DNA of 64,000 bases from Haliotis rubra (taxonomy: Eukaryota): the NCBI RefSeq assembly GCF_003918875.1, contig NW_025767681.1, forward strand, positions 1 to 64,000, read 5' to 3'. Shown here one piece after another: positions 1 to 63,488 of this stretch (its first letter is position 1; each line of letters starts with the position of its first letter). The notes beneath the pieces were generated by a model. It did not search any database and was not told the origin of the DNA. It worked only from the letters and a program-made list of their open reading frames with translations. The position numbers and the translations under genes are program-made.

Positions 1-1919
1 CATGAATCTGGTCATATTTCTTGCCATATGGCTTTGATACGCAAGTATCAACACACAAGCGTGAACAGTCTGCCCTGAAGAGAAACGCGACTTTCATTGT
101 TTAGAGTTACCTCCCTTAGTACATTGCTCAAAGAGTTCCCCGATAGGGACTCACAGATCTGCACAGTGCCTCTTTAGAGTTTTAGTAATGTGACTGAGTG
201 TGTGTGTGTAATTGTGTGTGTGGGGGATTGGGGGTTGGGGGTATTCAGCGCAGCATTTAACCCAACTCATGCTCACGTACTAATCTTCAATGATGTGAAA
301 GTAGATCAATATTTCCAGAAATATACATTAAGCTTAGGCAATATAATTGATTATCTAAAACCAAAAGAGAATAAGACGCCGACAGGCTCTCTGCCATACT
401 TGTTGGTGAAATCATATCAAACTTAAAAAACCATACGCTACTAAAATAATATATGTTCTATACATGCACAAGGTATCTTTTCTAAGGGAACTTTGAAAAG
501 GAGAAATAAATAACTGTACACATCGAGTGTACATATAACAATTTGTTAGGGGCACCAGCGACGTTGTGTTGTTTCATATATTACCAGAAACATATAGAAC
601 ACCTGCATTACTGTCCCCATTATCGAACTGACACACCCAAATGACATTCTATCCAAAACAGTGTTATAACATAACAGGTTCACCAGCAGCACGGAAAACA
701 TACAACCTACGAGCCATACTGTTTCAGAGTCAGCTCCGGTTCTTGCCACCAACAGACGTGTACCTGTGGAGGGTGTCAGTTTCAGCATCACCTGTACACT
801 AGATGCAGCTATCAGTGGAACTACTCTCTTCTACAAGGGTCCTACTTCTAACCAGGAGGCTGCTCATCATCAGTCAGCTGTGGGACATCTGTATCAGGAT
901 ACAATGTGAGTCTAGACAGGACATCCAGGATCGTGACTCTAGACATCGCATCAGCAGATTCCATCAGAGACAGCGGGACATGGAGATGTACTGATGGGGC
1001 TACAGGGTCAAATAACATAACATTGTCACAGTTTGCAGGTGGGTTTTAAGTGTGTGAAAATGGAAACCTATTAACTGTGGATGAGGTTGGAACGTGTGTT
1101 TAATTTGCTACGTCCGAGGGCATACAACACACATCAAAACACACATCAGGTTGTGTTGTATCGCATAGTAGTTTTAGAAAAGACTCTTTACTAAATTATT
1201 TTGCTTCTTTTCGGAACTGTTAAAATACACAGGATAAGCTTATTCATTGTTTATTCAAATCCCGGGCATCACACATTCCTCCATAGCTTTCCCTAATGTA
1301 CAGTAAATTTGAACTGACAACATTTATGCCTGATTAATTGTTTCTGAATGTTTTAATCCACATACCAGAGAACTGTCATGTTTGTCTTTCCTCTCATCAC
1401 CAGCTGACACACAGCAGGGTATAACGAACAGACAGTGACGTTATAGAGTCACGTATTTGTGCAAGACGATACGGTGTTAAACATACACACACTTCACGTA
1501 GTCATGGCTAATGGAACGAGAGAACTATATATCATACAAGGTTACATTGTTATGACGTAGTCTGGATTATTTATAGTTGATATGTTTGTGGTTTTATAAT
1601 ACCATTGTGAACGTACTGTAACGATGCTTCCAGCTGAAGGTGTGATGCTACCAGTTGTTTATGCTTGCATAAACAAGTAAACAAACCGTAAGCAGTCAGC
1701 GTGGTAAAGCATGCTCCTGTGTTAATACCAATCCTTCACTGACTGAACAGTGTTGCCCTGTACGATTTAGTTAAAGCACGAGGGCTAATAGTTCAGATCA
1801 AGATTTCACTTTATTACACTTGACATGATGGCAGAGCGTACTGTATTTCTCTTTGTGAGATGACAAATGTTACAACGACGATTAATCTAAGGTACAAAAG
1901 AAATCATGATCTAAATTAA

Positions 1920-2200
1920 CATCCCAAAGTTAAATTTAAGCTTACCAAGTTTTGTAAACGTAGTAGTTTTGTTCTAACAAAATTCGGCTATATTTTCCTA
2001 CAATTGCCAGCGGTTGAAGGGATGGTGTAAATCCAACTAGGGTCCATGCAGGTAGCAAAGGCACTGTAAGTCTCCATGGTCCCTAGTATGGTGATTTACC
2101 TTCAGTTGCTGGTGATTTAGAGCCCGTTTATATATTGTATTGTCTTGCATAATAGTATAATTTGTTAGTAACATGCTAGTTTTATATCTCTATCTGTGAT
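1920..2200 (+). mobile_element. 3' UTR fragment of the I/Nimb-type LINE; its (TCAC)n tail is probably the piece at ~3720-3856
   Basis: gaagggatggtgtaaatccaactagggtccatgcaggtagcaaa...tagtatggtgat matches 35565-35660. The stretch 3789-3856 matches the LINE terminus 35823-35886. Confidence 0.8.
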
Positions 2201-2228
2201 ACACGAAGGAGATAAATGTACTGTGTTT

Positions 2229-2357
2229 GGAAATTAGATGAATGTTAGACCGAATTGATAGTCTCTTAATTTCATTTAAAACCGAACGCGTAGCATGAGG
2301 ATTTACAAATGATCAATTTAGAGACTATCAATTCGTTCTAACATTCATCTAATTTCC
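2229..2357. repeat. Inverted repeat/hairpin with ~45-bp arms, probably a subterminal structure of a non-autonomous DNA element
   Basis: ggaaattagatgaatgttagaccgaattgatagtctct is the near-perfect reverse complement of agagactatcaattcgttctaacattcatctaatttcc. Confidence 0.75.
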
Positions 2358-4621: not shown

Positions 4622-4957
4622 CATGTCCATCAGGTCAGGTCCACACAACCAACTCTCTGTCTCTACCAGGGAACACAGTCAGTCTATCTAACTACTGTTT
4701 TGTGTTTACAGGGTGTGAGTGGCGTCCCTCCCAGCAGTACATCTTCCACCCAGGGATCATGTCCATCAGGTCAGGTCCAGACAACCAACACTCTGTCTCT
4801 ACCAGGGAACACAGTCAGACTATCTAACTACTGTTTTGTGTTTACAGGGTGTGAGTGGCGTCCCTCCCAGCAGTACATCTTCCACCCAGGGATCATGTCC
4901 ATCAGGTCAGATTCAGACAACCAACACCCTGTCTCTACCAGGGAACACAGTCAGTCT
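4622..4957 (+). repeat. 136-bp tandem duplication (~2.5 copies) spanning a splice acceptor and exon start
   Basis: tttgtgtttacag|ggtgtgagtggc at AG 4711 and AG 4847. Confidence 0.9.
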
Positions 4958-5900
4958 CTACAACAGGCAGGTGTCTCTCACTGTCAGTGTGGAACATGAC
5001 TCCTTTGATCCCCCGATGTATACCAAGTCTGTCACTTCAAACACCTACAGTGGTGGGTAGAACACCGGGTTTAGAATTATACCATCAATTACCTGGTTGG
5101 TGGTTAATACTGATGCGACCGTTTGAGGTGTTGATATTAATTTTACTAAATGATTATGGACATGTTCGCTTAATCTTTGTGTAATGCGGTCTAATGTATG
5201 TTAATGCATGTATGGACGATGATAGACAGATACAGGTATTTGTCTTGAAGTAGTGATAAGTAACGAAACAGTTCTAATCTATACAATATGCAAAACAAAA
5301 TATTCACTCCGGACTCCGGCTTACGTTGAGCGATCTAATCTAGATGTAGAAACTTTTTTAAATGACGTTTCCTTGCCATATGATAATTCTTTCTGTACTA
5401 ATAATTCAATTGTTGATTGCATGTACATTGTATATCAAGGGAAAGGCATTGAATAAGTTGATCCAGCAACACTTTTTCGTATATGTTTGAAATGGAGTCC
5501 ACCTCATGACATATTCATCATTAGAACATACCATTGCAAATCAAACATGCTACCGATGTGACAGTACATTGCTGTTAATGTCAGGTGTTATTACAGTTCA
5601 ACTTGCTATTCCAGTCCCAGTTACCCAGTGATACTGACAAACATCAGTTCTGATAATGAGAAGATAGGACTAGTGACAGGTCAATCCCTGACCTTGACCT
5701 GTGTGACGTCAGCCAGTTTTCCCACTTCTACTGTGAGCTGGGTGACCTTGCCATCAGGGACGGCACCTACAACCAGCACACAGAGACGACATTTGGTGTC
5801 CTGGTGAAGACAACAAGCCCGTCACATTCACTGTCAGTAGGAGTGACCTGGGGAGGAGCATTCGTTGTTAGGCTGAAAACATCAACGGTCAGACATCCCC

Positions 5901-6900
5901 ACAGTCTAACAGAGCCACACTGGAGGTTTGGTGTAAGTAGACACAGTCTAACAGAGCCAGACTGAAGTTTTCGTGTAAGTAGACATAGTCTAACAGAGAC
6001 ATACAGGGGGTTGGTGTAAGTAGACAGAGACTAACAGAGCTACACTGGAGGTTTGGTGTAAGTAGACACAGTATAACAGAACCACACTGGAGGTTTGGTG
6101 TAAGTAGACACAGTGTAACAGAACCACACTGGAGGTTTGGTGTAATTAGACACAGTCTAACAGGGACACACTGAGGGGTTGATGTAAGTAGACGCAGTGT
6201 AACAGAGCCATACAGTTCTTTTGTGTAAGTAGACAAAGCCCAAGACAGAGCCACAGTGGAGGTTTGGTGTTAAGTAGACACAATCTAAGAGAGCCTACAG
6301 CAGTCTAACAGAGCCACAATGGAGGGGTTGGTGTAAGTAGACACAGTCTCACAGGGCCACATTTGAGGTTTGGTGTAAGCAAACACAGTATAAAAGGGCC
6401 ACACTGGAGGTTTAATGTAAGTAGACACAGTCTAACAGAGCCACGCTGGAGGTTTGGTGTAAGTAGACACAGTCTAAAGAGCCACACTGGAGGTTTGGTG
6501 TAAGTAGACACAGTCTACCAGGACCACACTGGAGGCTTGGTGTAAGTAGACGCAGTCTAACAGAGCCACACTGGATGTTTTGGTGTAAGTAGACACAGTC
6601 TAAAAGGGCCACACTGGAGGTTTGGTGTAAGTAGACACAGTCTAACAGAGCCACACTGGAGGCTTGGTGTAAGTAGACACATTCAAACAGAGCCACAGTG
6701 GAGGTTTGGTGTAAGTAAACACAGTCTAACAGGGCCACACTGGAGGTTTGGTGTTGAGTAGACGCAGTCTAACAGAGCCACACTGGAGGTTTGGGTTAAG
6801 TAGACACAATCTGATAGAGCCACGCGTGAGGTGTGGTACAAGTAAACACAGTCTACCAGGACGACACTGGAAGTTTGGTGTCAGGAGACACAGCGTGACT
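5901..6900 (+). repeat. 42-bp minisatellite (~23 copies) made of exon end + splice donor
   Basis: Unit acagtctaacagagccacactggaggtttggt|gtaagtagac. The first copy is the end of exon 5597-5932 (SNRATLEVW); distal copies decay. Confidence 0.92.
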
Positions 6901-7649
6901 CAAATGCTGCTGAGCTATACTGGAAGATTGTTGAATGAAGACAGTCTAACAGATCCCACCTAAATATGCTCCATGAGTAGAGACAGTCTCACAAAGCTCT
7001 GAGGAAATATGCCAACATTTAGGATTTGTTCCATGTTTGTACACGTTTTAAGAACAAAGACAAATTTAACGCAAGACATCAGCTTTAACTGACGTTTTTT
7101 TTAAGATATAGCATATGGGTATAGAGTACGTTTACTACGATGAATGATAACTAGAGAAAATAGTGAAGTAAATATCTACAAATAGAGATTAAAGCAAGGT
7201 GCATTCCACTGAACAGATTCTTAACCCTTAGACTAACAGTTATTCGTCATGAGCGAGCTAACTGTAAACTTTGTATACTGTGTATCAGACGGACCAGACA
7301 CAGACCAGGTGAGAGTGACAAAACCAGCAAACACTGTGGTAGCGGAGGACCGTGACCTGACCTTAACATGTAAAACCTTGACCTCCGTGTCTCCTGGCGT
7401 GACCTTCACCTGGGACTACAGTGACGGGTCGGACATTACAGGAGGAAGTACAGGATCTGTGACAAAATCACCGAGTACCACGTGGTCACAGACTCGGGAC
7501 ATTCCGTCCTGTCAGGAGCAAGCCAGATGTCAGATGCAGTGTGAGAAACACCAGGACAGCAGTGGTCGTCAACAAGACTCTGTCACTCGGGGATGTCAAG
7601 TGTAAGTTGATTTCGCGTGTTTGAATGGACCTATGTACATATCCTTATC

Positions 7650-8485
7650 CTTACACCTCTGTGATGTACGTATAAACTTACATTATACTTTATGTTTGGA
7701 TCCATCAGCCCCACATCAAGATCGCCCATACCGTCCATGATTTCCACCTATGCGGATTTATATATATAACATTAATCTTACATGATACTCATCTTTGATT
7801 GTACAGACTCCACCTCCAGACCGCCATGCAGTCCATGATTTCACCTCTGTGATGTATATATAAACTTACATTATACTCATCTTTGGATCCATCAGGACCG
7901 ACCTCCAGACCGCCCTACAGTCCAGGATTTCACCTCTGTGATGTATATATATATATAAACTTACATTATACTCATCTTTTGATCCATCAGACTGACCTCC
8001 AAGCCGCCCTACAGTCCAGGATTTCACCTCTGTGATGTATATATATATAATAATCTTACATGATACTCATCTGTTGATTCTACAGACCCACCTCCAAGCC
8101 GCCCTACAGTCCACGATTTCACCTCTGTTATGTATATATAAACTACATGATACTCATCTGTTGATTCTACAGACCCACCTCCAAGTCGCCCTACAGTCCA
8201 GGATTTCACATCTGTGATGTATATATAAACTACATCATACTCATCTGTTGATCCTATAGACCCACCTCCAGGCCGCCCTACAGTCCAGGATTTCACCTCT
8301 GTGATGTATATATAAACTTACATGATATTCATCTGTTGATTCTACAGACCCACCTCCAGGCCGCCCTACAGTCCAGGATTTCACCTCTGTGATGTATATA
8401 TAAACTTACATGATATCTCATCTGTTGATTCTACAGACCCACCTCCAGGCCGTCCTACAGTCCATGGTTTCACCTCTGTGATGTA
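7650..8485 (+). repeat. ~88-96-bp minisatellite (~9 copies) made of intron tail + acceptor + exon start
   Basis: ttgattctacag|acccacctcca, AGs at about 8085, 8172, 8259, 8347 and 8436, with more diverged copies upstream. Confidence 0.9.
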
Positions 8486-8989
8486 CGCTGGAGTCCAAAA
8501 GACCATCCGGTGCACAGTGACGGGGGCAATCCTCTGGCCGACATCACGTGGTCCTGTTACAACACCAGCAACACCGACAGTGAGTCCAGCAGCGGGGGAA
8601 CCAAGACATCCTCACTCACCTTTCTGGTCACTAAACTCCAGAACTCCAGACGGTGTCAGTGTCAAGCAACGTGGATATATGGAGGATACGATGAGACTGT
8701 GACACAGACATTTACTGTGTATTGTGAGTATTGGGGCAGATGTACAGATACATAAGATAGATACGATGAGACTGTGACATAGACATTTGCTGTGTATTGT
8801 GAATATTTATGTATACAAATACTGGGATGGTTTTTTGATGATCTCTTCACAGTGGAGAAAAGAAGCCAAACTCAGTCAGTCCACGAGGATTCGTCTCTGG
8901 GGTTGAATGGTGTACCACACAATCGCCCTGCAAACTCAAGCCTTGGTACTTTGTGTAAATGAGGCTTTGTCGCCACCCTGTTCTTCGTC

Positions 8990-9922
8990 CCCATACCTCA
9001 GCAATGTATCACACTGTATATATGTATTACAGATCCACCCGACAAACCCACTACACAACCAACCCTGGTACTCTGTGTCTCACATCACTGACCTCGGCAA
9101 TGTATCACACTATATATATGTATTACAGATCCACCCGACAAAACCCACCACAACCAACCCTGGTACTCTGTGACTACATCACTGACCTCGTCAATGTATC
9201 ACACTATATATGTATTATTAGATCCACCTGACAAACCCAACACAACTAACCCTGGTACTCTGTGACTACATCACTGACCTCGTCAATGTATCACACTGTA
9301 TATATGTATTACAGATCCAATCTGACAAACCCACCACAACCAACCCTGGTACTCTGTGTCTACATCACTGACATCGGCAATGTATCACACTGTATGTGTT
9401 ACAGATCCACCCGACAAACCCACCACAACTAACCCTAGTACTCGGTGTTTACATCACTGACATCGGCAATGTATCACACTGTATATATGTGTTACAGATC
9501 CACCTTGACAAACCCACCACAACCAACCCTGGTACTCTGTGTCTACATCACTGACCTCGGCAATGTATCACACTGTATATATGTGTATTACAGATCCAAT
9601 CTCGACAAACCCACCACAACCAACCCTGGTACTCTGTGACTACATCACTGACCTCGTCAATGTATCACACTGTATATATGTATTACAGATCCAATCTGAC
9701 AAACCCACTCACAACCAACCCTGGTACTCTGTGTCTACATCACTGACCTTCGTCAATGTATCACACTGTATATATGTATTACAGATCCACCTGACAAACC
9801 CAACCACTACTAACCCTGGTACTCTGTGTCTACATCACTGACCTCGGCAATGTATCACACTGTATGTATGTATTACAGATCCACCCGACAAACCCACCAC
9901 AACCAACCCTGGTACTCTGTGT
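8990..9922 (+). repeat. ~94-bp minisatellite (10 copies) made of acceptor + exon start
   Basis: tatgtattacag|atccacccgacaaacccacc, AGs from 9032 to 9878; the last copy opens the intact exon 9879-10154. Confidence 0.92.
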
Positions 9923-10536
9923 CAAGGAAGGGCTACATCACTGACCTGCTCCTCGTCCCCTGACCACGGCAACCCTCCGGCCACCTTCTACTGGACAAAG
10001 AACAGCATAGCAGTCCACACAGGCAGCTCCTACACTTTCTCTCCAGTGAAGGCCGACAACGGAGCTGACATCAGATGTGCTGCTGGTAACACCTACACCG
10101 ACAGAGCCGGGTCCTCACGTCCACAGTCAAATGCCAGGCAGCTCAGTGTATATTGTAAGAGTCGTAACTCATTTAGGCACAGGGATAAGTTTTTCTGGTC
10201 GTCACATATCAGTGTGCGAATGTTCCTCATGCAGCCCAGAAAACTAAGTGAAGCAGCATATTACGTGGTAAAGTAAAATTATTTTGTTTACATTTTTTTC
10301 TTTCATGTTAACCAAACTGAATGCAATACTACTTTAAACCCCACTCAGACCTGTGAATAACCCGAAACTCTTCTGGTAATCTGTCAGATGTGGGAGCACC
10401 ATCAATTACTCCAGCTGCCACACAGACCAGGAAAGAAGGAGAGAGCCTGGTTCTCTCACATGTTCAGTTGATGGTAATCCTGACAATGCTGCCATTTCCT
10501 GACATTCAATGGTTCCCATACCATACCATGCCATAG

Positions 10537-10915
10537 GGAGGTCAACTGTCAAGGTCATTGTCAACTGTGAGTACAGATAGAGTCTGTGTGTATCACTTTA
10601 GCTAAAGCAGCAGAGACGTCTAACATGGAGGTCAAGGTCATTGTCAACTGTGAGCATGGATAGTGTCTGTGTGTATCACTTTAGCTAAAGCAACAACTCG
10701 GATATCTACAGGGAGGTCAACTGTCAAGGTCATTGTCAACTGTGAGTACAGATAGTGTCTGTGTGTATCACTTTAGCAAAGCAGCAGAGACGTCTAACAT
10801 GGAGGTCAACTGTCAAGGTCATTGTCAACTGTGATCATGAATAGTGTCTGTGTGTATCATTTTAGCTATAACAACACGGATGTCTGCAAGGGAGGTAATT
10901 GTCAACTGTGAGTAC
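10537..10915 (+). repeat. ~88-bp minisatellite (~5 copies) made of exon end + donor
   Basis: ggaggtcaactgtcaaggtcattgtcaact|gtgag is repeated. Confidence 0.88.
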
Positions 10916-13201
10916 TTAGTTAAAACAAGATAAATACCAAAAGCGTGTTTGTTATCAAGTTTCTGCAATGTTGATTAGCTGACGTGGAACCAACATTTAT
11001 GGCCAGTTTTCTATAACTGCAAGACAACTGAGAACGGTGTTGTATTGAGAAGTTTACCTTGTGAAGCAAAGGTACAGACACAGAATATACAGATATAACA
11101 CCATACAGGCACTCCTGACCCGTACAGGATTTGCTACATTCCATGCTATTCTGGCTATTTTACTGACTCACTTGTGTTTGTTTAGGTATTCTCATTTTAA
11201 AGGGATGGCTTCACTTGGAGGAATCAAGCAGATAGTGTTGAAATCCTGAAGTGTTTTAAATTCAGTATCAATTTCGTCCGAAATTCTTTGAATTTTGTTC
11301 AGATGGTGGCCAGAAAACAGAATGAAAGTCAATGAATGGCATGTGTTCAAACACAAACATTTAGGAGGACAACATTTTAGTTTCGTTCAGTATACAGTGT
11401 AGCAGTATACAGTGTAATATTTTGGGATATATTCTTCAGATCCTGGCAAGTATAAGTATGATGACTGCCAACGAATAACTCCCCTCAGCATATAGACTTA
11501 GTGCAGACTGTAGACAAAGGGAACTACACCTGTACCGCCCCACGTCAGCAGGGGCAGTAGTAGTAGTAGTAGTAGCTGCTTAGCAGTTTTAAAATATTCT
11601 GTTGCGTCATAAAATTGGCAACACACCCTTAACTGGAGTTGACACAACATGTACAACCGATATAGAGTTTTAAAAAATGAGTCCCAGTCACTTTTCAAGA
11701 ACTTGCTGAAACCCACTTCTTACAACCGATTGCTTTTGAATAGAACTATTTTTACACTTTCTGTGTTTTTAACGATGTATGCAGCGTCTTTGAGCAACTC
11801 TGATGGAAACTAGGAAATCCAATAATTATTATCATTATCATTATTAAATGTATGTTCCTTATTTGTTTATTAAGGATGCGCTATCAACAGCTGGCATGAC
11901 AGTTAACACATGGATATTTATCTTCCTTTTAGTCATTAAGAAATACTTTCTGTAAGGTTCTCCACGTGTTGATGGGACAGTTTTTCTCCCACTCAAGTAC
12001 GCAACAAGACTAGGCGGTGACGTGATTGTGTCTGTGTCAGTCCTGGCCTACCCCCTTCCTTCATTCACCTGGAGTAGATCCATCAGCACCAGCCAGGACC
12101 TCACTGGTTCCTCCAGCCCTGTCTCAGACATCTCAGTCACTGCCAGACTACACCTTACTAACCTCCAGGAACAGGACTTCGGGGACTACAGTCTTACAGT
12201 GGACAATGGAGTTGGCGAGTCAGTGACATACACAGTCAACATAGTGCCTTCAGGTGAGTTGCCGAACTCCGATTTCTCATTGATCATTCAAGCTTTCAGG
12301 ATTTTCAGATAACTAGATATAACTGCCGTTTGTATGGTTTTACGTTCACGTTAGTTCCACAACTACTAAACTGCAACATTCTAACATGAAACGAATCATT
12401 TTCTGATTTATTTGTTGTAAGGACCACCAAACACACCTACACAGTTTCGAGATCTGCTTAATGCAACTTCGTCGTCGGTATGGCTGTCGTGGCTGCCTGG
12501 GTTCAATGGTGGAAAACCTCAGACGTTTCTGATTGAGTATCGTCGGTTTGCTACAAGAACTTGGACTGTTTATAAATCTTATGATGACAGAGGCGAGACG
12601 ATGGTTGTAGAAGTGACCGCTCTTACACCAGGAGAGATTTATTCATTTCGACTACAAGCTAGAAATGACTATGGGGATTCTGACAGATATGTCTTTGTAG
12701 AAACTACGACTGCAGGAGGTAGGAATCACTCTAAATATATCATGGGAAACTCGTTAGCTGCAAATGATGAAAACGTATGAATCCATTCTAAGAACAACTT
12801 CCAATTTCATAATTAGATAAAGTGAAATCCTTCAAGATGTTGGCAATCCTTCAAGTGTTAAGTGTAATGACTGAACAAATATAATTATCAAGTAAAATTG
12901 GTGTACGTATATGATTCATTTTTGTGGGTAAATATTATCACAGCATCACTTATGTCGTGGTAAATATGATTTTGAACAATTAACGAAGATTAGAACGAAT
13001 AGTTCTGCAAATATTTGATGAAGTAATCACATGGTCTTTGCAATCAAAGTAAGCATGTATGTATGGGTTTAGTTGGCGAGTGTGGGCATGAGAGACGCCA
13101 GGAATGAGCTCCCTGGAGAACTTGGGAAGAATTGCCTTCATGAATCCATGTTTATTGTACACGAAGATTAGCTGGTTCTGGTGGTGAGGGTATCGTGTCA
13201 C

Positions 13202-13402
13202 TGCTTGCCTGGTCGAATAGTTACAGACGGACGTCATGTCACCGGTACATTGACGTACGATTAGCAGGATACGTCGACTAACTGTTTCTGGTGGTCAGGG
13301 TATCTGCTTTGCCTGGTCGAATAGTTACAGACGGACGTCATGTCACCGATACAGTGACGTACGATTAGCAGGAAACGTCGACTAACTGTTTCTGGCGGTC
13401 AG
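13202..13402. repeat. ~104-bp intronic tandem duplication (2 copies)
   Basis: tgcctggtcgaatagttacagacggacgtcatgtcaccg...gtcgactaactgtttctgg occurs twice. Confidence 0.85.
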
Positions 13403-51700: not shown

Positions 51701-54700
51701 AACGAGCGTGATGGAGGGAGGGAGGGAGGGGAGCGTCGGCCAAATGTCGGTCCAGCTTAAAGTGAAACATGACTTCAACATTTAACGCACTTCTCAAAGG
51801 CATGAGGTTCAAACCCAGAATCATAATAGTGATGATCCCAGAATTCCAGGACGTTCCTAGAATTGGAGCACCAAAACTTCCCGAGTAATGCGAATGATGT
51901 TTGAATTGTCTATCAATTCCAACTATTTAAAGTGAGTGAGTGAGTGAGTTAATATTTAACGTCACATCGGCAATATCTCAGCCATATCGTGACGAAAGCA
52001 ATTTATACAATAAAAAATGAATACATTTTAGAGAGTAAAACCTGTCGCCGATGGATTGTAAAAATACTAGAATATCACATATAGGAACATAAAACTAGCA
52101 TGTCAAACTAAAAGATTGTAATTAAAGAAGACAATACAATATAAAACACGGGTTATAGATCGCCAACAACTGAAGATAGATCACCATACTAGGAACCATG
52201 GGAACTTACATTATTGTGCTACCTGCATGGACCCCAGCTGGATCCAACTATTCAAAGAAATATGTTAAATGGAATCATATCCTAAACGATATCATATCAG
52301 ACCATTTATACGCCTCTGTCTGAAATTGTCATTTTAGTCACTTTGTGCTCTATGATTCTAAGGTGACAATATCGGTTTTACCAGAAGTTGAGATATTTTA
52401 TACAAATATGATAATATATAGTACAGAAAACTAAACGACATTTTCAACTGGAACCCTAAACATGTGAAACAAACTTTATGTAGGCCACCATGACTTAATG
52501 TTATGCTTTTAGATAACTCATTAATGAGTTTACCAGATAAACCAGTCAGAACGTGGTTATTTTATATTTGTTTTAGAGAAGGACGACACAATTGGGGCTT
52601 ATCCAGCTAAAGCTGTTGGGGTTGTGATAATATCTAATACTCTTTCGTCTGGTCAGGTTCTCCTCGACTTGACGACCCAGTGTCCCAGCAACTCAAGTTC
52701 GCCGCTCCACTGGGTGGTGACGTGACTGTGTCTGTGTCAGTCCTGGCCTACCCCCTTCCTACATTCACCTGGAGTAGATCCATCAGCACCAGCCAGGACC
52801 TCACTGGTTCCTCCAGCCCTGTCTCAGACATCTCAGTCACTGCCAGACTAGACCTTACTAACCTCCAACAGCAGGACTTCGGGGACTACAGTCTGACAGT
52901 GGACAGTGGAGTTGGAGGGATAGTGACATACACACTCGACATTGTGTCTGAAGGTGAGAGTCTCTTGCTAACCTCCAACTGTAGGACTCACGGTAGACAT
53001 CGGCGAAGGTGAAACAGTCAGAACAGGGTCTGAAGCTGAGTGTTGAATGACCTAATCAGACTAATCCGGATTATTGCTCATGGATTACAGATAATCCAAC
53101 TACTGACCCATAGTACATCCCTCAATGTCTTCATTATCATGACTCAGAAAGAGGAAATCAAATGGCACGGTATCCTGAATATCCGCCTTGGAGTTAAACA
53201 TTCAAATACGGCAGGATAAAACGGTGCCTCTTAGTCATATCTTGGTCTTGCCATAATTGCAAACGCTACAAGACAGTAAAGATTCCTAGCATTCTCCCAA
53301 AATGCTTACAAACACAAAGATAAATTGTCACTTCCATTATGTGCATGTGCAAAATTTGAAAAACACACACGTGAAAATATGCAATTACAAATATTACCTA
53401 AACATATGAACCTCTTTGTTTTATGATTATATGGCAGAGTCTGTTCATACTCATCTTTTGACTGGAAGACACTTTTTCTAGTTGTAACCTGTGATGCGAT
53501 CACAACATATCTGAGTTCTGTGTGTAACATAGTATATTTAGCTGGGAAAACTCATACACTTACATAGTGTATTCGATATCTATGCATTACCATTTTGTGT
53601 ATCATATATGTATTTAGCACTGTATACGTAATAGCGATGTAAACATGCTCTTCTAATGACGCAGAACACGGACGGGTTGAAAATGAAGGTCATTTCAGTT
53701 CAGATTAAATACTTTTCGAATATTCTAAACTCCCAGTACTCCCAACTTCTCATATTAGAAGGAATGAGCCTCGGATTTCCCAGACAAACCTCTGAAAACT
53801 AACATAATAATTTGATAATTATTTCAGACATTCCTGCAGGAATGATGCCTGATGTCATGCAGACATTAACCCATCAAACTCATATCAATATTAACTGGTT
53901 TCCATTCCATTTATTTAGGTTCATTTTCATTCATCATTGACAACTCGCTATTTTCCACCCTCAAATATGTAATACATCACGGCATCGATTGACTTTCATA
54001 TTTGATATTTCTACTAATAGCCATGTGTGATGCGTGAAACCATTCAATGTATGCATATCGACACATAGTTCGCCCATCCCTCCATTTGATCTCTGGCAGA
54101 TAAGATTGCAACATTTCAAATAACTTAGTACATAAAATTCATTCATTGTTGAGAAGGTCACAACAACTGAATAGATAAGTTTGACTTAACTTAACGTTTA
54201 ATGTTAATGTTGTCATGTTTATTTACAATAAATTGTCAGTTGACATGTTTTCAATGAAACCTTATTGTTCTTCGTTACCGGTTCATTAATTACTTTAACA
54301 CAACTGCATGCATACAAAAGTGTAGTGTCAGTACATTTTCTGTTTCCAGGACCACCAAGCACCCCAACAAACATCAGTGTCTCCCCAAAAGGTCCCTTCA
54401 CTCTACATGTTTCCTGGAAGGAGGAGTTCAATGGCGGAGCTACTCAGACATTCACTGTAGAGTACAGCACAGATGAGGAGACCTGGAAGACAGCAGGGAG
54501 TCATACGGAGACAGGAAGTGGGAATTACTTGACATCAGTCATCAATGATCTCAACTCTGACACTCGGTACTATGTGAGGGTTGTCGCCAGGAACGCGTTT
54601 GGAAGCAGCAGCTACACTGAACATGTGACTGGACTCACGGAGAAGACAGTTATACGTACGTCTCATTTTACATTCAAGCAATAATCTCGGTACACGTAGG

Positions 54701-57579
54701 TAAAGCTGTTTGTTGCCTCTGTTTCATACATGGTACTTACTCAAGAGGTAATCAATTTTCTTAATGTACTGAAAGAGACTTTATTTGTTAATATTCACTA
54801 TCGGTGTAATGTTAAAAGCTACACCTATTTGCATGCAGTCCATACTTGGTTGTCTTAGCGACCAGTTTATGTGGCTTGAACGATTCGGTTATGAAGCCCT
54901 AATGCTGTCATAAACTTTGCTTCTTACTGTCCCTTTCAGCCCCTGTAGCGATTTACGTATTGTTTCTGACACCACGACGTTTCTATATAACGTATTTTGA
55001 TTTTGATATTTCAACATGACTGACTGACTGAGTTTAGTTTTACGCCGCTTCTAGCAATATTCCAGCAATATCACGGCGGATTTCAACATGAAACCTCAAG
55101 AACACATGTTGTGTGAGGAGACTAAATTTAAAAGTTTCAATATATCGACATGCTGCAAAGGTATAACTGGAATATTGCAGAGTGTAAATAAAACGAATGA
55201 TTCACTCACTTGCCTTAACTTATATTTCTTTCATCTAATGATGTGATGATTATACGGATAAATATGAAAGTCTGAAAGGCAATGTAAGTACTACTTCAAG
55301 TCACTTGAAAGAGACATGGTGTCTCCATTTGCTGTATACTTGTTATTGTTTAGAAAATAGACATACAGACAGACTAAATGAGTCTTAAACAAGGGTGACG
55401 CTGAAACATTTCCAATTTTGTGAAACCTTTGAGAGAACATTTAGCGAGAACACCGGTGATACCAGTTTCGATATCCTTGGTAGCTCTGTGTGCAATAATA
55501 GTTCCAAAGAAACCGCTTTGATTTCGCAGCTATTTTTTCAGTCCTCTTGAACTCACAACCGATGTCAGCAATTGACTCTCCCCCGTTATTTGTTTTCTAT
55601 TATTCGTTATTATCCCGCATAACAATCTCCATCTCAGTTTGTCATTTGGAAGCTACTGCTAATGTGTGACTGCTAAATCCAGACCAACCGGTTAACAATT
55701 GTCAAAGATACAAGACCACCCTCTGTAATCTGTCTCTGAATGTTTCCAGTAACAGTAATCGACATTTATGATAGATGTATACAACACATTATAACAACAC
55801 TGAAAGCAACCATATTCGACACATTCATTCTATAAGTGGCGGGTGCTACGTGGAGAGCAGAACATACCTACTTTGCCACGAACACCTGGTGTTATCACCG
55901 ATATTCCCTGCTCCTTCCTTTCCTTTTTGACTACTATTCTTAACGTCCCATAGAATCTGTTTTGGATAAACGGATCTGTTTATCACATGTCCGTATTATG
56001 TAGCAATGTAGTATGGCATTGTTTATACGTGGGGTATTTCTGTTTAAGCTCATGCATCCTCTTTACCATCTGGATTAATAGCAGGAATGACAGTCAGTGT
56101 GGTATTGGTCGTCGTCATCGTGGTCGTTGTTGTCGTCATGACCAGGAAAGGATACAGATGCATATTCATATTGCAGAAGACAGGTAGGTCTGCTGTGTTC
56201 AGAAAACAATGGCAACATAGGTTTGCATGACACCTCCAAACATATATTATTAAATGTATGAATGAAGACATGTTGCCTAATCACAAGTTTGACAACAATA
56301 ACGTACTAAGGTATAGTATAATGCAGCAACTCACTGGGACACATGTTTACTTTCTCCTTGATACAGAAAATACCTAAATTCCACTGACAAGTTTGTCATG
56401 ACAACATCTTTGTTATCTCCACAGGCTCAACAGACGCACAGAATGCGTGAGTACAGTTGTACTTGTGAATGTCAACATCTGTAATAGCCTTCCCAATCAA
56501 TTAGATCTCTTCCTCTTTACACATATCCCCAAACACCTGGGTTCGATTCCAAACATGGTTATGTACGTGTATACATGTGTAAATTCCATGCCCCTCTAAC
56601 AGTGTTGTCGTTTCTACTGCAGGTCACAGATCCCCGAAAATAGAGGAGACCAAGTGCATTTCCAAGGTATGTCAATATTCAAAGTACGTGTATGTATGAT
56701 AAAAGGAAAAGGGTTCGATTATTTGCATCGCTGTTGTCAAATAATGCCAAGTTCATCTCCACACGTGTCTGTTTTTCTTCAATATAGATGTTAACCCGTA
56801 CTCTGGCCTGCAAGATAGAGCGGATGACAAGCAGACGTACACAGACCTGACGAATTATGAAAATACAGGAATCCGTCCTTCTACAGGTATCCAACCGAAC
56901 TTGTATACATCCCTGGATCTCTAAACTGGATGTGGACTGTTTTGATTTTGACTATACCACCAGCTTCTAAAGTGCCAATCAAGCAGTTCATCCATAAAGT
57001 AGCATTCCTTTCTTGTCATACCATCGAAGTCTTTAAATTGTCACTGATGGATTCTCAGCAGTCATGTAGTTACTATAAGCAAGTGGTAATTATTTTCAGA
57101 CACTGTCAACACCTATGAAGATATCAACCAGACATCAAGACATGGTTATGAACACGACAAGCCTGCCCTGTATGTGAATGCTGATATCAAAGGCAAAGGT
57201 ATGACTGATGTGGAAACAATCGTCAACGAGAGCAACATAACACAATGCATAGCATGAACATCTCCAAGTAGAACTCCAGGAAACAATAGGCCCCCTCCAT
57301 CCCCAGCTTCACGTTTGAAGAAGTGGTTACAATACATTGTTAGCCATCACAACTTGACAAAGACCTGTCTGTCACTCGATTGTCTGACTCATAACTTAAA
57401 CATTCCTCTACATAATTAGTTGTGCACTGGGTATTACCATACTGGGTCAAGTGCTGTGTATGAATATTGTAATGTTTCTATATAATTATTTGTGCACTGG
57501 ATATTACCATGCTGGAGCAAGTGCTGTGAATGAATAGTGTAATGCTTCTGTTTCAGATTCGCCCTATGTGAACACCTGA
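42748..57579 (+). CDS. Gene C: SP-V-Ig(LINE-interrupted)-Ig-Ig-Ig(Cys-less)-FN3-TM receptor with Tyr-motif tail
   Basis: Exons: 42748-42802 (MASLWVIATSVFAVVLLK), 43810-44166 (V: LRC..W..YAGTYRC), 45380-45909 (with insertion), 46658-46915, 51174-51452, 52657-52953, 54350-54655 (FN3), 56049-56183 (TM GLIAGMTVSVVLVVVIVVVVVVM-TRK), 56425-56446, 56623-56666, 56788-56886, 57100-57198, 57557-57579 (DSPYVNT*). Phases consistent. Confidence 0.85.
43085..43905 (+). repeat. 119-bp minisatellite (7 acceptors) made of acceptor + first 96 nt of the V exon
   Basis: AGs at 43095, 43214, 43333, 43452, 43571, 43690 and 43809. Confidence 0.95.
45488..45747 (+). mobile_element. 5'-truncated I/Nimb LINE 3' end inserted in a coding exon
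   Basis: Matches 35625-35886. TSD ctccaacaacaa at 45476-45487 and 45748-45759. Confidence 0.93.
46883..48503 (+). repeat. 54-bp donor minisatellite (~30 copies), same unit as in gene B
   Basis: First GT at 46916. The frame stays open through the donor at 47780, followed by three 41-bp truncated units. Confidence 0.95.
48497..49347 (+). repeat. 119-bp minisatellite (7 copies) made of the 3' end of an otherwise absent Ig exon + donor
   Basis: The unit translates YVCTATNTLSPCVGTSVVRSDTVEVTVDVQ|gtaagtatc, with GTs from 48616 to 49332. Confidence 0.9.
49500..50940 (-). mobile_element. Decayed RTE-like LINE RT fragment, interrupted by an I/Nimb 3' fragment
   Basis: SITDHIFMLQAL...YCAFNDFRKVFDYVDR; LLLFAD; WGLCVN. 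Confidence 0.75.
49775..50232 (+). mobile_element. 5'-truncated I/Nimb LINE 3' fragment
   Basis: Matches 35411-35886. TSD-like tccatcYgcaaa on both sides. Confidence 0.85.
51933..52242 (-). mobile_element. 5'-truncated I/Nimb LINE 3' fragment
   Basis: (GTGA)n followed by the reverse complement of the LINE 3' UTR. TSD tccaactattYaaag. Confidence 0.88.
55020..55079 (-). mobile_element. 5'-truncated SINE tail
   Basis: Matches 3260-3322. TSD atttcaacatga. Confidence 0.85.
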
Positions 57580-59401: not shown

Positions 59402-59561
59402 NNNNNNNNNNNNNNNNNNNNNNNNNNNNNNNNNNNNNNNNNNNNNNNNNNNNNNNNNNNNNNNNNNNNNNNNNNNNNNNNNNNNNNNNNNNNNNNNNNN
59501 NNNNNNNNNNNNNNNNNNNNNNNNNNNNNNNNNNNNNNNNNNNNNNNNNNNNNNNNNNNNN
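59402..59561. other. Assembly gap (160 N)
   Basis: Run of N. Confidence 1.
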
Positions 59562-60289: not shown

Positions 60290-61345
60290 ACTGTTAATTG
60301 TAGGGTTGTTACGACGCTCCATCAGGATCGCCATATTGACGTTGTCCATATCAGTGATTGAACACTGCCGACTGCCAGGACTGCTGCACTATAATAAATA
60401 GTTCAAGGTTGACGTGGGGGTCATCAGCGCCGACTCCATGCGACGCCGTCTACATACTACAGGGCTCTATGCTCGACGTCCTTACGTTGGACCAATTCTG
60501 ACTGACAGACACCGTAATGAGCGTATTCAATGGGCTAGCAGACATTTTCAGTAAAGGTTACAACAATGGCATGGTGTGGTAGTCACTGACGAGTCACGTC
60601 TTCATCTACGTAATGCTGACGGCCGATTACATTTTTGGCGTAGACGTGGTGAACGTTATGCTGATGAGTGTGTGGTTCAGACGGACCTTTGGGTGGTGGG
60701 AGTGTCATGGTCTGGGATGGAATAAAGTACAATAACAGCACTGCCTTCATGTCTGTCAAGGGAGAGTTAATGCCCTCTATTACCGTGAGCAGATACTTCA
60801 GAATCACATCGTATCTGTCTTCAATCGACCCCAAGATGTCTATACTTTTCAACAGGACAACGCACGGGCACACACAACAAGACTTTCCATGCAGTATCTG
60901 GCCCAGCAACACATCCAGGTTATTCATTGGCCAGCACAGTCGCCAGATGTATCCCCCATGGAGCACTTGTGGGACGAAATTGGTCAAAGTCGTTCGCGGC
61001 AACAACAGATGCGAAACATCCGGGAACTTGAGGCTGCACTACTGCAGAAGTGGAATGCCATCCTCAAGAACTCTATTCGGACGCTTATTGACTCAATGAG
61101 GAGACGTTGAACTGCATGTGTCAATGCAAATGGCGGTCACACGCGATATTGACTTTTCGATTTGACCCCACGTGTGTTTGATGCTTTCTGACTGTGGAAC
61201 ATTTCAATGAATGAGGGTCTTTTCTATGTTGTTGTTTTTGTCAGTCGTCTATCTGTTATTATCCATTAAAAAAATATCTATTTCTTACACGTGCTTTTAA
61301 TAATCTGAACTTATATAAGCGGTGCGTTTTCAATGATGTTCAGTA
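60290..61345 (+). mobile_element. Degenerate Tc1-type DNA transposon (DD34E transposase relic)
   Basis: TDESR, FQQDNARAH, WPAQSPDVSPMEHLWD, LIDSMRRR..NGGHTRY. Right end gtgcgttttcaatgatgttcagta-TA. Left end not found. Confidence 0.85.
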
Positions 61346-62390
61346 TATTTCTAACTGCATCACACAGCAGGTATGTAAAATGTATATATTTCTAACTGCA
61401 TCACACAGCAGGTATGTACAATAATATATGTCTAACTGTATCACACATCAAGTGTGTACAATGTATATATTTCTAACTGCATCACACAGCAGGTATGTAC
61501 AATGTATATATTTCTAACTGCATCACACAGCAGATATGTACAATGTATATATGTCTAACTGCATCACACAGCAGGTATGTACAATGTATATATTTCTAAC
61601 TGCATCACACAGCAGATATGTACAATGTATATATTTCTAACTGCATCACACAACAGATATGTACAATGTATATATTTCTAACTGCATCACACAGCAGGTA
61701 TGTACAATGTATATATGTCTAACTGCATCACAGAGCAGGTATGTACAATGTATATATTTCTAACTGCATCACACAGCAGATATGTACAATGTATATATGT
61801 CTAACTGCATCACACAACAAGTATGTACAATGTATATATTTCTAACTGCATCACACAGCAGATATGTACAATGTATATATTTCTAACTGCATCACACAAC
61901 AGATATGTACAATGTATATATTTCTAACTGCATCACACAGCAGGTATGTACAATGTATATATGTCTAACTGCATCACACAGCAGGTATGTACAATGTATA
62001 TATTTCTAACTGCATCACACAGCAGATATGTACAATGTATATATGTCTAACTGCATCACACAACAAGTATGTACAATGTATATATTTCTAACTGCATCAC
62101 ACAGCAGGTATGTACAATGTATATATTTCTAACTGCATCACACAGCAGATATGTACAATGTATATATGTCTAACTGCATCACACAACACGTATGTACAAT
62201 GTATATATTTCTAACTGCATCACACAACAAGTATGTACAATGTATATATTTCTAACTGCATCACACAGCAGATATGTACAATGTATATATGTCTAACTGC
62301 ATCACACAACAAGTATGTACAATGTATATATTTCTAACTGCATCACACAGCAGTAATGTACAATGTTTATGTTTCCAACTGCATCACAAC
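61344..62390 (+). repeat. 41-bp minisatellite (~25 copies) containing cag|gtatgt
   Basis: Unit tatatttctaactgcatcacacagcaggtatgtacaatgta. Confidence 0.95.
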
Positions 62391-62976
62391 ACACCTACAA
62401 TGCAACTGTGAACGCTATTTCTGCATGCCAGTGTATTTGAATATCACACTTAAATGTGTCGATACACTTGTTTACTTCGATTTAATATTTACTGACTGAT
62501 CACATGCTGTAATCCCGGGCAAATGCAGAGTTGTCTCCCTTAGTTGACAATTATTTTCACATTAGTATTACGCGTGTCATATAAACCTGGGACATACGGA
62601 TTTATAGTGACATCCAAATTACAGAGTTTTAGCTCTTTAGTTGTATATGTTCAAATCTGATCTTAGTTTATAAAATGTAAATAGTCATAGACAAGAGATT
62701 TCCCTTTGCATTTGTAAAATAGAAAGTGTCGATAAATACAGACAAAACTAGTATCCCTCAGCTGATTTTGTACCAGTGGTCATGTGGACAAGGCGTCCGA
62801 CTTTGGATTATATATCTGTCATTAGTTGACTGTCTTCCCAACAGTCTCTGCACCACCCTGTCTTCACCACACAGTAAACATACAGCTACTAGACGGAGAG
62901 ACATTAGCATATCTCATTCATACTGAATGCAGTGATAATTCTATCCAAATGAACCTATATTTCAGATCTTATCGAG

Positions 62977-63488
62977 ATGCCACGCATATCCTCTGCTGTT
63001 ATATTCTATGTCATTACAGGTACGTCTTTAAGATGGGCCATATTTGTACAGTATACGTACCTGAATTGGATACATATTACCATATTTGTGATAAATATAA
63101 CGTGAAAAACAGACGCGGCTTGGGACGACGTACTATCCTTCATTCTTAATACACAAATACCTTTTACATGTATTGTATTAAGAGCACCCAGTGCCAGTCC
63201 AGTGTTGTCTCCAGTGTCTGACACAGCCAGGTTTAGCTGGGAGATTCCACAGGGATATCTTGGCTGACAGTCCTGCTGGTGTCAATGTGTTCACAGTGAC
63301 AGCCCCTGGGATATTCGTCAGCTTTGGCAACTACGGAGATAGACTGGAATACCAGGGGAACATAGCAGCCAGGAATGTCACCTTCACCCTCAGCAACATC
63401 CAGACATCAGATGCAGGGACATACACATGTGGGGCTGGAGGGGCTGCTACTGTGATACAGAACTGTGGACAGAAACTGGTTGTCCTGA
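62977..63488 (+). pseudogene. Gene D 5' part: intact signal exon plus a gene-B-type V exon with damaged acceptor and frameshift; continues beyond the window
   Basis: 62977-63019 MPRISSAVIFYVIT|gt. V exon ~63182-63488 is homologous to 19438-19776, with a net 20-nt deletion after EIPQG and the homologous AG changed to AA. Confidence 0.8.

Follow-up and report, generated by a model that had tools for sequence, protein, structure and literature searches.

A tandem array of lineage-restricted Ig-FN3 receptors with tyrosine-motif tails in abalones

The subject of this work is a cluster of four related receptor units, A, B, C and D, on the plus strand of a 64,000-nucleotide stretch of DNA (contig NW_025767681.1, positions 1 to 64,000; hereafter the window), assigned to the blacklip abalone, Haliotis rubra, by the proteins that match the exons of gene B. 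They belong to a much larger same-strand tandem array of receptors expanded in Haliotis, of which the window covers 63 kb, and sequence comparison indicates that these receptors form a real, lineage-restricted family (Haliotis, then Gigantopelta aegis) of the immunoglobulin superfamily (IgSF). Complete members combine immunoglobulin (Ig) domains, a fibronectin type III (FN3) domain, a transmembrane (TM) segment and a tail of tyrosine motifs, and we lean towards reading them as type I surface recognition receptors that would signal through phosphotyrosines in this tail. The abalone family is undescribed, and our literature searches found no paper specific to an abalone IgSF family with immunoreceptor tyrosine-based activation or inhibition motifs (ITAMs, ITIMs); this kind of receptor family is already known.

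A lineage-restricted family in same-strand arrays

A preliminary description, made from the letters of the window, had proposed four tandem paralogs with Ig domains, FN3 and a TM segment, and both the number of units and the architecture held. Pfam finds V-set, Ig_2, Ig_3, I-set and fn3 domains in exons of B, C, D and part of A, a hydrophobic TM segment follows FN3 in genes A, B and C, and tblastn with 198 retrieved proteins (cited here by P number) gave no minus-strand match in the window. All inputs to searches and fold predictions were single exons or database proteins, never exon models that we had joined. Every Ig, FN3 and TM exon is in phase 1-1, and splice sites are canonical except for the FN3 donor of gene B, which lies at a run of six G (G6). 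The window has a G+C content of 40% and a single run of N, at 59402-59561.

The reach of the family was traced with two kinds of query. The Cys-less Ig5 exon, used as a family marker, gave 16 matches below 1e-30 among 1.84 billion representatives; the close matches are all from Haliotis, the next all from Gigantopelta aegis, and other phyla come only then, with generic proteins that are hemicentin-like, contactin-like or DSCAM-like. With the FN3-TM-tail region as query, word searches returned 41 proteins of the A/B type and 11 of the C type from H. rubra, H. rufescens, H. cracherodii and H. asinina. The supposition of a lineage-specific family is thereby confirmed, with close relatives in these four Haliotis species only and intermediate ones in G. 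aegis only. Much as had been predicted, NCBI annotation hides the family behind other names: turtle homolog B-like, nephrin-like, hemicentin-1/2-like, NCAM1-like, CEACAM5-like and CD22-like, as well as contactin-like, syg-2-like and titin-like.

Clustering likewise proved general, with same-strand tandem arrays in every species examined. Nearly all members from H. rufescens, H. cracherodii and H. asinina map to a single chromosome or contig per species, and same-strand family neighbours were seen in these three species and on other H. rubra contigs (10 loci with DNA). Five family gene models fall within 85 kb at an H. asinina locus (L008), six lie within about 170 kb in H. rufescens under one model that spans 277 kb, and in H. 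cracherodii the members are spread over 14.3-17.5 Mb of one chromosome. A tree built on the C-terminal 265 residues groups 17 members from H. cracherodii and H. rufescens, the two Californian species, in a clade of their own (SH-aLRT 98), and also has an asinina-only clade and species-specific duplicates beside a few 1:1 pairs. One-to-one orthology across species, which would have spoken against a lineage-specific complex, is not seen in it, and by this tree the history of the family is one of birth-and-death, or concerted, evolution.

Within the window, self-blastn reveals both duplication and chimerism, as the preliminary description had held. Positions 11952-14813 of gene A align with 26631-29307 of gene B at 70-77%, introns included. 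Ig3 of gene B together with its 54-bp array is about 90% identical to gene C, Ig4 and Ig5 are 87-89% identical to it (87-95% for Ig3-Ig5 overall), and both V exons of gene B match gene D at 80-82%. The head of gene B thus resembles D, its middle C, and its FN3-TM-tail part A, which makes gene B a mosaic. Throughout the window, exons are conserved far better than introns.

Sequencing runs agree with a large family that is transcribed. On gene B, DNA runs give 10-22 distinct contigs per exon site and a summed depth far higher on exons than on introns, which fits many paralogs. In two runs that behave as RNA, X1 and X2, contigs skip the introns 26369/26633, 27402/28199, 28837/28928 and 29020/29152; family transcripts are therefore expressed and spliced at the predicted junctions. 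In run X1, 38 of the 185 RNA-type contig pieces are at least 99% identical to gene B.

Gene B, its V-set head and its tyrosine tail

Gene B spans 19222-36133 on the plus strand and corresponds to NCBI XP_046555515; its exons match XP_046555515.1 (P0151, 857 aa) and XP_046555516.1 (P0001, 750 aa) at 96-100% in tblastn. In its layout a leader is followed by two V-set and four further Ig domains, FN3, a TM segment and the tail. The features are listed below, with dN/dS as the ratio of nonsynonymous to synonymous change and AF2 for AlphaFold2.

19222-19261, +: leader exon (MKTVCAAVLYLMA-), placed by the N-terminus of P0151
19438-19776, +: V-set exon 1; P0151 100%, Pfam V-set 6e-05, AF2 V-set model, VH/VHH fold matches
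20519-20848, +: V-set exon 2, a tandem duplicate, in frame in the NCBI model; V1-V2 dN/dS 0.41
21873-22157, +: Ig2 exon; Pfam Ig_2 1.6e-07, tblastn with P0151 and P0001
23056-23313, +: Ig3 exon, 95% nucleotide identity to Ig3 of gene C, followed by the 54-bp donor-site minisatellite
26091-26369, +: Ig4 exon; Pfam Ig_3/I-set, RNA-type contigs
26633-26929, +: Cys-less Ig5 exon, the family marker; Pfam search, RNA-type contigs
27106-27403, +: FN3 exon; Pfam fn3 3e-09
28199-28354, +: TM exon (..GTFLLTLLIGGTVLMVLYRKGYR..), matching P0151
28650-28662, +: 13-nt micro-exon (..DAQK..), present in NCBI isoform X1
28791-28837, +: first tail exon, cyt0 (HPEPVEMDNRGYSSL, YSSL); RNA joint 28837 to 28928; missed in the preliminary description
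28928-29020, +: cyt1 (YSNL-x8-YTQL); RNA contigs, P0151
29152-29262, +: cyt2 (STYEGV-x5-VTYESI, YQN); RNA joint 29020 to 29152, continuing past 29262
29650-35350, +: near full-length retrotransposon of the long interspersed element (LINE) type in the last intron, with gag-like, endonuclease/reverse transcriptase and RNase H open reading frames (ORFs)
36111-36133, +: last coding exon (-APQHGHD*); P0151 C-terminus, RNA loose end

RNA-type contigs enter Ig4 at 26091 from the end of an Ig3-type exon and join 26368/9 to 26633; a candidate acceptor at 26052 is ruled out by the RNA loose ends. The G6 run at 27399-27404 has one G too many for an in-frame GT donor. Five G at 27399 are demanded by RNA joints from 27401/2 to 28198/9, by NCBI isoform X1 and by about half of the DNA contig depth. 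Six G with a canonical donor yield the frameshifted, TM-less isoform X2 (P0001), whereas X1 (P0151) is in frame, and gene B is probably functional if the run is an assembly error. Downstream, the micro-exon is required because the TM exon and cyt0 would otherwise be out of frame, and X1 reads ..NTLK DAQK S(SS)HPEPVEMDNRGYSSL DQITAPAQYSNL.., exactly the tail that contains it; a longer cyt0 starting at 28760 was dropped once the conserved micro-exon had been found, with P0151 agreeing. The end of the RNA contig past 29262 matches 36111 with 3 mismatches, so the last exon lies beyond the LINE, whose ORFs of 400, 276, 277 and 303 aa include a reverse transcriptase and an RNase H-like end.

The tyrosine motifs quoted in the preliminary description, YEN and YVN among them, are all present in plus-strand open frames. 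In gene B these are YSNL-x8-YTQL at 28951-28998, STYEGV at 29172 and VTYESI at 29205; in gene A, YSNM at 14492, YTQL at 14528, STYEGV at 14678 and VTYESI at 14711; and in gene C, YSGL at 56799 and, after x9, YTDL at 56838, YEDI at 57114, and YVN both in cyt2 and at 57562. With the YSSL of cyt0, which is new beyond that description, gene B has three YxxL motifs at ITAM spacing, YSSL-x8-YSNL-x8-YTQL; both differences between A and B in cyt0 are synonymous in the assigned frame. In a complete member the tail has about 100 residues, encoded by five small phase-matched exons that include a micro-exon of 13-16 nt, and the A/B type reads YSSL-x8-YSNL-x7/8-Y[T/S]QL, YEN, sTYEG[V/M/I] and vTYESI seven residues apart, and YQN. 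The ITIM-like pair is thus itself at an ITAM-like spacing (x7).

The fit to the consensus classes varies among members. The ITAM class (Yxx[L/I]-x6-8(9)-Yxx[L/I]) is found in gene B and kept in about 45 paralogs; gene A departs from it at one position, with YSNM for YSNL. The ITIM class ([I/V/L/S]xYxx[I/V/L]) is represented by STYEGV and VTYESI in both A and B. VTYESI is kept in nearly all A/B-type tails, the first motif is STYEGM, off consensus, in many paralogs, and NTYEDI of gene C is off the ITIM consensus with its Asn at -2. YSGL-x9-YTDL of gene C stands at the upper limit of the 6-9 residues by which ITAM spacing is defined (10.1101/2022.03.04.482883).

The tail owes its credibility as a signalling module to conservation, and not to the bare occurrence of short motifs. 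The A/B type is nearly invariant among paralogs and between species (..RKGYR..PEPVEMDNRGYSSLDQI..AQYSNLEE(E)SEKQQY(T/S)QLKIYENTKADAAADTSTYEG(V/M/I)TETPPVTYESIRASPYQNTGAHSQ..), and the tyrosines are kept in about 35 A/B-type and about 10 C-type tails of four Haliotis species. A/B-type, C-type and Gigantopelta tails, together with those of a third kind in Haliotis (P0137), are otherwise about 30% identical in alignment and all keep YSxL, a YxxL 8-9 residues on and Y(E/D)N two further; Haliotis tails additionally keep TYE(G/D/E)(V/I/L/M), YEx(I/V) and YxN. The core YSxL-x8/9-YxxL-x2-YEN, with TYE(G/D)(V/I/M), YExI and YxN after it, is found in about 50 paralogs of the four Haliotis species and in part in Gigantopelta. 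A composite tail-core regular expression picked out only family members among the 198 retrieved proteins, with 0 of about 145 other Ig proteins matching. The tail is among the best-conserved parts, and cyt1 has a dN/dS of 0.11 between A and B.

Two further features may bear on the output of the receptors. If the 13-16 nt micro-exon is skipped, cyt0 is read in a different frame, in which its final three bases are a TAG stop, and the receptor would lack the tyrosine tail; precisely this end is found in P0176, an NCBI isoform of a different H. rubra member (..NLWKWTTEDIHL*). The TM segments contain small-xxx-small motifs, and one TM position is dimorphic (LLTLLI[G/E]GIV): gene A and 9 of about 36 A/B-type members have Glu there, whereas gene B has Gly. 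An acidic TM residue in an ITAM-bearing chain recalls partner pairing of the CD3/DAP12 type.

At the other end of the receptor, the V exon of gene B is modelled by AF2 as a nine-strand V-set fold (pLDDT, the predicted local confidence score, 85.7; strands 12-15, 20-25, 37-40, 46-50, 56-58, 66-68, 76-81, 90-95 and 102-113). Its best PDB matches by Foldseek are VH/VHH domains at a template-modelling score of ~0.70, and Pfam V-set scores of 23.6-26.6 bits lie around the cut-off of 26. The V alignment has no B-strand Cys and hence no canonical disulfide from B to F strand; invariant cysteines instead occupy the F strand (C94) and the G strand (C106). The V-like heads of the preliminary description are therefore borne out in gene B, whereas the gene A exon at 728-1038 to which the term had also been applied is frameshifted and has no Pfam or family match.

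Variation in the V domain is concentrated in three loops resembling complementarity-determining regions (CDRs): in an alignment of 23 close V domains, entropy reaches at least 1 bit in columns 33-39, 45-64 and 96-101, corresponding to BC, C' to C''-D, and FG. Parsimony counts over 14 V exons from four species gave a dN/dS of 1.08 in the structure-defined BC, C'C'' and FG loops versus 0.53 elsewhere (Fisher p = 0.05). An extended loop partition (p = 0.0004) was set aside, as it had been picked after viewing the data. Whole-exon dN/dS within the window is 0.11-0.50, with no sign of positive selection in any of the window exon pairs, and the medians of per-domain identity between gene B and 33 family members are 73-88%, a subset having a different N-terminal cassette type. 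Within a constrained framework the V loops evolve about neutrally, which is suggestive of diversification and short of proof of positive selection. Of the earlier picture of a diversifying, rapidly evolving family, only the CDR-like loops with their dN/dS of about 1 remain; the exon dN/dS values and domain identities of 75-88% tell against it for the rest.

Damage, repeats and mobile elements in the cluster

The remaining units differ in completeness. In gene A the 3' half is complete (Ig5, FN3, TM, tail and last exon) and the 5' half is damaged.

728-1038, +: Ig-like exon of 311 nt, the 'V-like' exon of the preliminary description; not a multiple of 3, frames switch near 852-906
5629-5932, +: decayed Ig exon, frameshifted and interrupted by a stop codon in frame at 5869-5871; Pfam Ig_3/C2-set_2 on the N-terminal half only
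7289-7601, +: Ig exon with two frame switches (three frame segments); Pfam Ig_3 on the N-terminal half only
8437-8723, +: Ig exon with a frameshift at a G5 run, 8522-8526
9879-10154, +: intact Ig exon of 276 nt; Pfam Ig_2 8.6e-08, P0004 86%, P0011 90%
11957-12253, +: Cys-less Ig exon, 'Ig5'; 85-87% nucleotide identity to B and C, dN/dS 0.49
12422-12718, +: FN3 exon; 88% nucleotide identity to FN3 of gene B, dN/dS 0.25; canonical donor GAG/gtagga
13591-13746, +: TM exon (..LLILLIEGTVLIVLYRKGY..), with a Glu inside the membrane span
14044-14060, +: micro-exon of 17 nt with an A6 run, against the 16 nt expected from paralogs (in P0003, ..K GASRKS F..)
14233-14285, +: cyt0 (YSSL), by splice sites
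14469-14561, +: cyt1 (YSNM, YTQL, YEN); dN/dS against B 0.11
14658-14768, +: cyt2 (STYEGV, VTYESI, YQN); dN/dS against B 0.50
14969-14991, +: last exon, by splice sites

The first three exons have no close relative among the retrieved proteins, and for 728-1038 tblastn with the 198 family or Ig proteins gave no match at all; the end of 7289-7601 (..KTLSLGDVK) matches the start of paralog P0004. On 8437-8723, P0004 aligns at 90% in one frame to 8528 and in another frame after it, and this intact paralog (..TVTGGNPL..) needs six G where gene A has five. With a micro-exon of 17 nt and not 16, the tail of gene A is out of phase as assembled.

Gene C is nearly complete, running from a second type of N-terminal exon to the end of the tail.

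43810-44166, +: N-terminal Ig exon of the second type; Pfam ig/Ig_2/V-set, 74-81% to P0003, P0183 and others, single frame
45376-45909, +: Ig2 exon, split by a repeat at ~45466-45749; the halves match P0003 137-166 and 171-223
46658-46915, +: Ig3 exon, followed by 54-bp and 119-bp arrays
51174-51452, +: Ig4 exon; dN/dS against B 0.39
52657-52953, +: Ig5 exon; 89% nucleotide identity to B, dN/dS 0.31
54350-54655, +: FN3 exon of a type unlike A and B; Pfam fn3 5e-10, P0004 91%
56049-56183, +: TM exon; P0004 100%
56425-56446, +: micro-exon of 22 nt, by splice-site reading and P0004
56623-56666, +: cyt0, 44 nt, by splice-site reading and P0004
56788-56886, +: cyt1 (YSGL-x9-YTDL, YEN), by open-frame motifs
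57100-57198, +: cyt2 (TYEDI, YVN), by open-frame motifs
57557-57579, +: last exon (DSPYVNT*), by splice-site reading

No NCBI protein exactly equal to gene C was retrieved, and the model rests on P0004 and splice-site reading. Exon plan and phases of the tail are as in A and B, and its joins agree with P0004; a TM acceptor at 56082 was ruled out in favour of 56049 by homolog alignment.

Gene D is represented in the window by one broken V exon, the remainder lying beyond it, and is separated from gene C by the assembly gap.

59402-59561: assembly gap, intergenic, between the end of gene C and the exon of gene D
63170-63488, +: V-set exon of gene D; a 20-nt deletion after ~63255, seen in alignment to V1, shifts the frame (two tblastn frames), Pfam V-set 7.5e-06 on the 3' part

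The gap lies 1.8 kb past the stop of gene C (57577-57579) and 3.6 kb ahead of the gene D exon. Its two flanks share no sequence, and tblastn with the 198 proteins found no family similarity adjoining it; between 57600 and 63150, matches are confined to a transposase-like stretch at 60745-61062. Being intergenic and without adjoining family similarity, the gap touches no reading frame or exon, and the linkage of gene D to genes A-C across it rests on the scaffold.

Could all four units be pseudogenes left by unequal crossing-over, with function only in copies elsewhere? Each unit offers a break to such a view: several exons and the stop at 5869-5871 in A, the G6 run in B, the repeat in Ig2 of C and the 20-nt deletion in D; the NCBI models for A (335 aa) and for B isoform X2 are truncated as well. 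Three 1-nt frameshifts, at 27399-27404 (G6), 8522-8526 (G5) and 14054-14059 (A6), however, all lie in homopolymer runs of otherwise conserved exons and may be assembly errors; in B the shift is contradicted by the RNA joints, and about half of the DNA contig depth likewise lacks the extra G. Since every Ig exon is in phase 1-1, a broken one can be skipped without loss of frame, and gene C may be functional by skipping its Ig2 exon. Exon-pair dN/dS of 0.1-0.5, the far better conservation of exons than of introns and the run X1 pieces nearly identical to gene B also speak for function, and we hold a graveyard of four dead genes to be quite unlikely. The pseudogenization noted in the preliminary description accordingly stands for 5' exons of A, for D and for Ig2 of C, where it is real, and is in question for the homopolymer shifts. 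The apparent decay of multi-copy genes in the H. rubra assembly may be partly technical.

The cluster is also rich in repeats, some of them at exon boundaries.

2012-2200, 35562-35895, 45466-45749, 49775-50245, 51934-52243: interspersed repeat of ~265-285 bp, similar to short interspersed elements or miniature inverted-repeat transposable elements, at least 5 copies
4622-4954: tandem array, 136 bp
5900-6893: tandem array, 42 bp
7773-8485: tandem array, 87 bp
8995-9923: 94-bp acceptor-site minisatellite ahead of gene A exon 9879-10154 (Tandem Repeats Finder, TRF)
10548-10905: tandem array, 89 bp
23281-25922: 54-bp donor-site minisatellite of gene B, 49 units, repeating the Ig3 exon end and splice donor
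37946-38815: intergenic satellite, 92 bp x 9.5, 97% match
43093-43919: 119-bp array ahead of the gene C N-terminal exon (TRF)
46883-48504: 54-bp array of gene C, 27 units, repeating the Ig3 exon end and splice donor
48484-49347: 119-bp array past gene C Ig3 (TRF)
60555-61107: Tc1/mariner-like transposase remnant, overlapping ORFs
61344-62388: intergenic satellite, 41 bp x 25.5, 92% match

The copy of the interspersed repeat at ~45466-45749 is the one that splits Ig2 of gene C. The N-termini of the NCBI family models P0156 and P0007 match the transposase remnant, suggesting that transposon sequence was absorbed into these models. The 54-bp minisatellite is common to paralogs and orthologs: H. 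rubra has 2-10 units at its other loci, H. cracherodii 3-14 and H. rufescens 10, whereas in H. asinina the unit is single-copy. By eye, the consensus units of several further arrays include an exon end next to its splice donor or acceptor, suggesting that minisatellites at exon boundaries recur in this gene family.

Proposed function and closest known systems

How might such receptors work? In the reading that we lean towards, ligand-driven clustering at the cell surface would lead to phosphorylation of the tail by Src-type kinases; tandem-SH2 kinases of the Syk/Shark type would be recruited to the paired YxxL motifs, Grb2/Drk to pYxN, and phosphatases of the SHP/SHIP type to the ITIM-like pair. 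A single tail would in this way combine activating with damping signals; haemocytes or epithelia are the most plausible sites. Duplication, the exchange of membrane-distal cassettes of Ig exons, and change, relaxed or diversifying, in the three CDR-like V loops would supply new specificities. The signalling mechanism is proposed from motif logic together with oyster precedents, and the putative immune role from motifs and the same precedents.

Several findings weigh against this reading. As assembled, each of the four units in the window has at least one defect. A loop dN/dS of about 1 fits mere relaxation, the p value for the pre-defined loops is only 0.05, and the ectodomains are well conserved (75-88%). 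In the tail, many paralogs have Met at +3 of the first 'ITIM', gene B has Cys for the tyrosine of YEN, and YxxL/V/I is also a generic YxxPhi endocytic and sorting signal. The RNA contigs, 90-99% identical to gene B, may derive from paralogs.

Some of these points suit another role, in which the proteins would be Ig cell-adhesion molecules (IgCAMs) of adhesion and wiring, with tyrosines for Nck/PI3K-type docking and YxxPhi endocytosis. All of the best database names belong to IgCAMs, which typically have an Ig-FN3-TM layout; the ectodomains are under purifying selection, every YxxL/V/I doubles as a sorting motif, and the small-xxx-small TM motifs suggest dimerisation. Nephrin/Kirre (IRM), Turtle/IgSF9, DSCAM and NCAM indeed share Ig, FN3, a TM segment and tyrosine-containing tails with the abalone proteins. 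Nephrin has 8 Ig and 1 FN3 domains, Turtle 5 and 2, DSCAM 10 and 6, and NCAM 5 and 2. The abalone complement of 1-2 V-set, 4 Ig and 1 FN3, in contrast, fits no named orthologous family; with differing domain counts and no bilaterian-wide one-to-one conservation, orthology to Turtle/IgSF9, nephrin, DSCAM or NCAM was not found, and the Pfam FN3_DSCAM-DSCAML_C score of 36.6 is below the cut-off of 39. While those families are conserved and low-copy, the abalone family is confined to abalones and Gigantopelta, highly expanded to dozens of tandem copies and divided into lineage-specific clades, in contrast to wiring molecules, which are conserved as single copies. Paired YxxL motifs keep a strict x7-9 spacing between tail types that are otherwise about 30% identical, and variation is concentrated in CDR-like loops; both points also count against an adhesion role, which we regard as possible but doubtful.

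The nearest precedents for surface recognition receptors come from molluscs. In oyster CgNCAM1 (Crassostrea gigas), 3 Ig domains and 1 FN3 precede a TM segment and a tail that contains two ITIMs; the protein is strongly expressed in haemocytes, binds pathogen-associated molecular patterns as well as microbes, and recruits SHIP2 (PMC11841013). A review credits the IgSF receptor CgIgIT2 with a classic ITAM (PMC11999971), and the title of its primary paper, as it appears in the reference list of PMC11841013, calls it an immune inhibitory receptor. Like CgNCAM1 and CgIgIT2 or CgSiglec-1, the abalone proteins would be mollusc type I IgSF receptors, sharing by architecture the Ig (+FN3), TM and ITIM/ITAM tail layout of CgNCAM1 and CgIgIT2. 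Unlike the oyster receptors, they begin with V-set heads, possess 5-6 Ig domains, combine ITAM-spaced with ITIM-like motifs in the same tail, and are encoded in arrays of dozens of genes. In haemocytes of H. discus hannai, a transcript named 'protein turtle homolog B-like', a match by name only, is up 6 h after challenge with Vibrio alginolyticus (PMC11250055).

The preliminary description had pointed to allorecognition, and the outline is shared with Hydractinia Alr and Botryllus receptors: clustered V-set/I-set/FN3-like receptors, ITAM/ITIM tails, pseudogenes and exon shuffling (10.1101/2022.03.04.482883; PMC12582321). Hydractinia Alr comprises about 41 clustered genes with V-set, I-set and Fn3-like folds and a TM segment, some with ITAM/ITIM tails, and shows pseudogenes, exon shuffling and alternative splicing (10.1101/2022.03.04.482883). 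Alr domains, however, are highly unusual in sequence, whereas the abalone domains are ordinary Ig and fn3 domains detectable by Pfam; and Alr tails diverge more than their ectodomains, the reverse of abalones, where the tail is among the most conserved parts and V domains are about 80% identical across species. The two belong to different phyla and resemble each other in architecture only, and abalones are solitary, non-fusing animals with no known allorecognition. An allorecognition role in abalones is unlikely, and a histocompatibility complex of the Alr or Botryllus kind highly improbable.

Among vertebrates, LILR/KIR, CEACAM, Siglec/CD22 and FCRL likewise form tandem birth-and-death clusters with Ig ectodomains. 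Members of FCRL and CEACAM combine ITAM-like and ITIM motifs in one tail. In contrast to these clusters, the abalone receptors have FN3 and a V-set without the canonical B-F disulfide, and in their TM segments no basic residue or adaptor pairing was seen, some members having a Glu. The CEACAM5-like and CD22-like names of abalone members reflect the best BLAST match only, and the likeness to Hydractinia Alr and to vertebrate LILR, CEACAM and FCRL clusters is one of analogy.

A bolder proposal can be made, which we consider unlikely as it stands: abalones, and perhaps other early-branching gastropods, may have independently evolved non-self recognition resembling that of natural killer (NK) cell receptors, with a germline repertoire of dozens of V-set receptors. 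The three CDR-like loops would then be a diversified ligand-binding face, and the invariant tail would comprise a triple ITAM-spaced YxxL array, Grb2-type YxN sites and the ITIM-like pair. Output might be tuned by inclusion or skipping of the micro-exon (full tail versus tail-less decoy), by the Gly/Glu switch in the TM segment (partner pairing) and by cassette shuffling.

Finally, we would like to consider what the surface recognition receptors that we favour would mean for the biology of abalones. If the signalling is real, they would provide a large, tractable, clustered V-set repertoire with combined ITAM/ITIM logic in a lophotrochozoan. The family would join the single oyster receptors and the cnidarian and tunicate allorecognition families, and so bear on the independent origins of immune-type IgSF complexes. 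It would also be of interest to aquaculture, where abalones face Vibrio and herpesvirus disease, as a set of genes hidden until now behind turtle-, nephrin- and hemicentin-like names.

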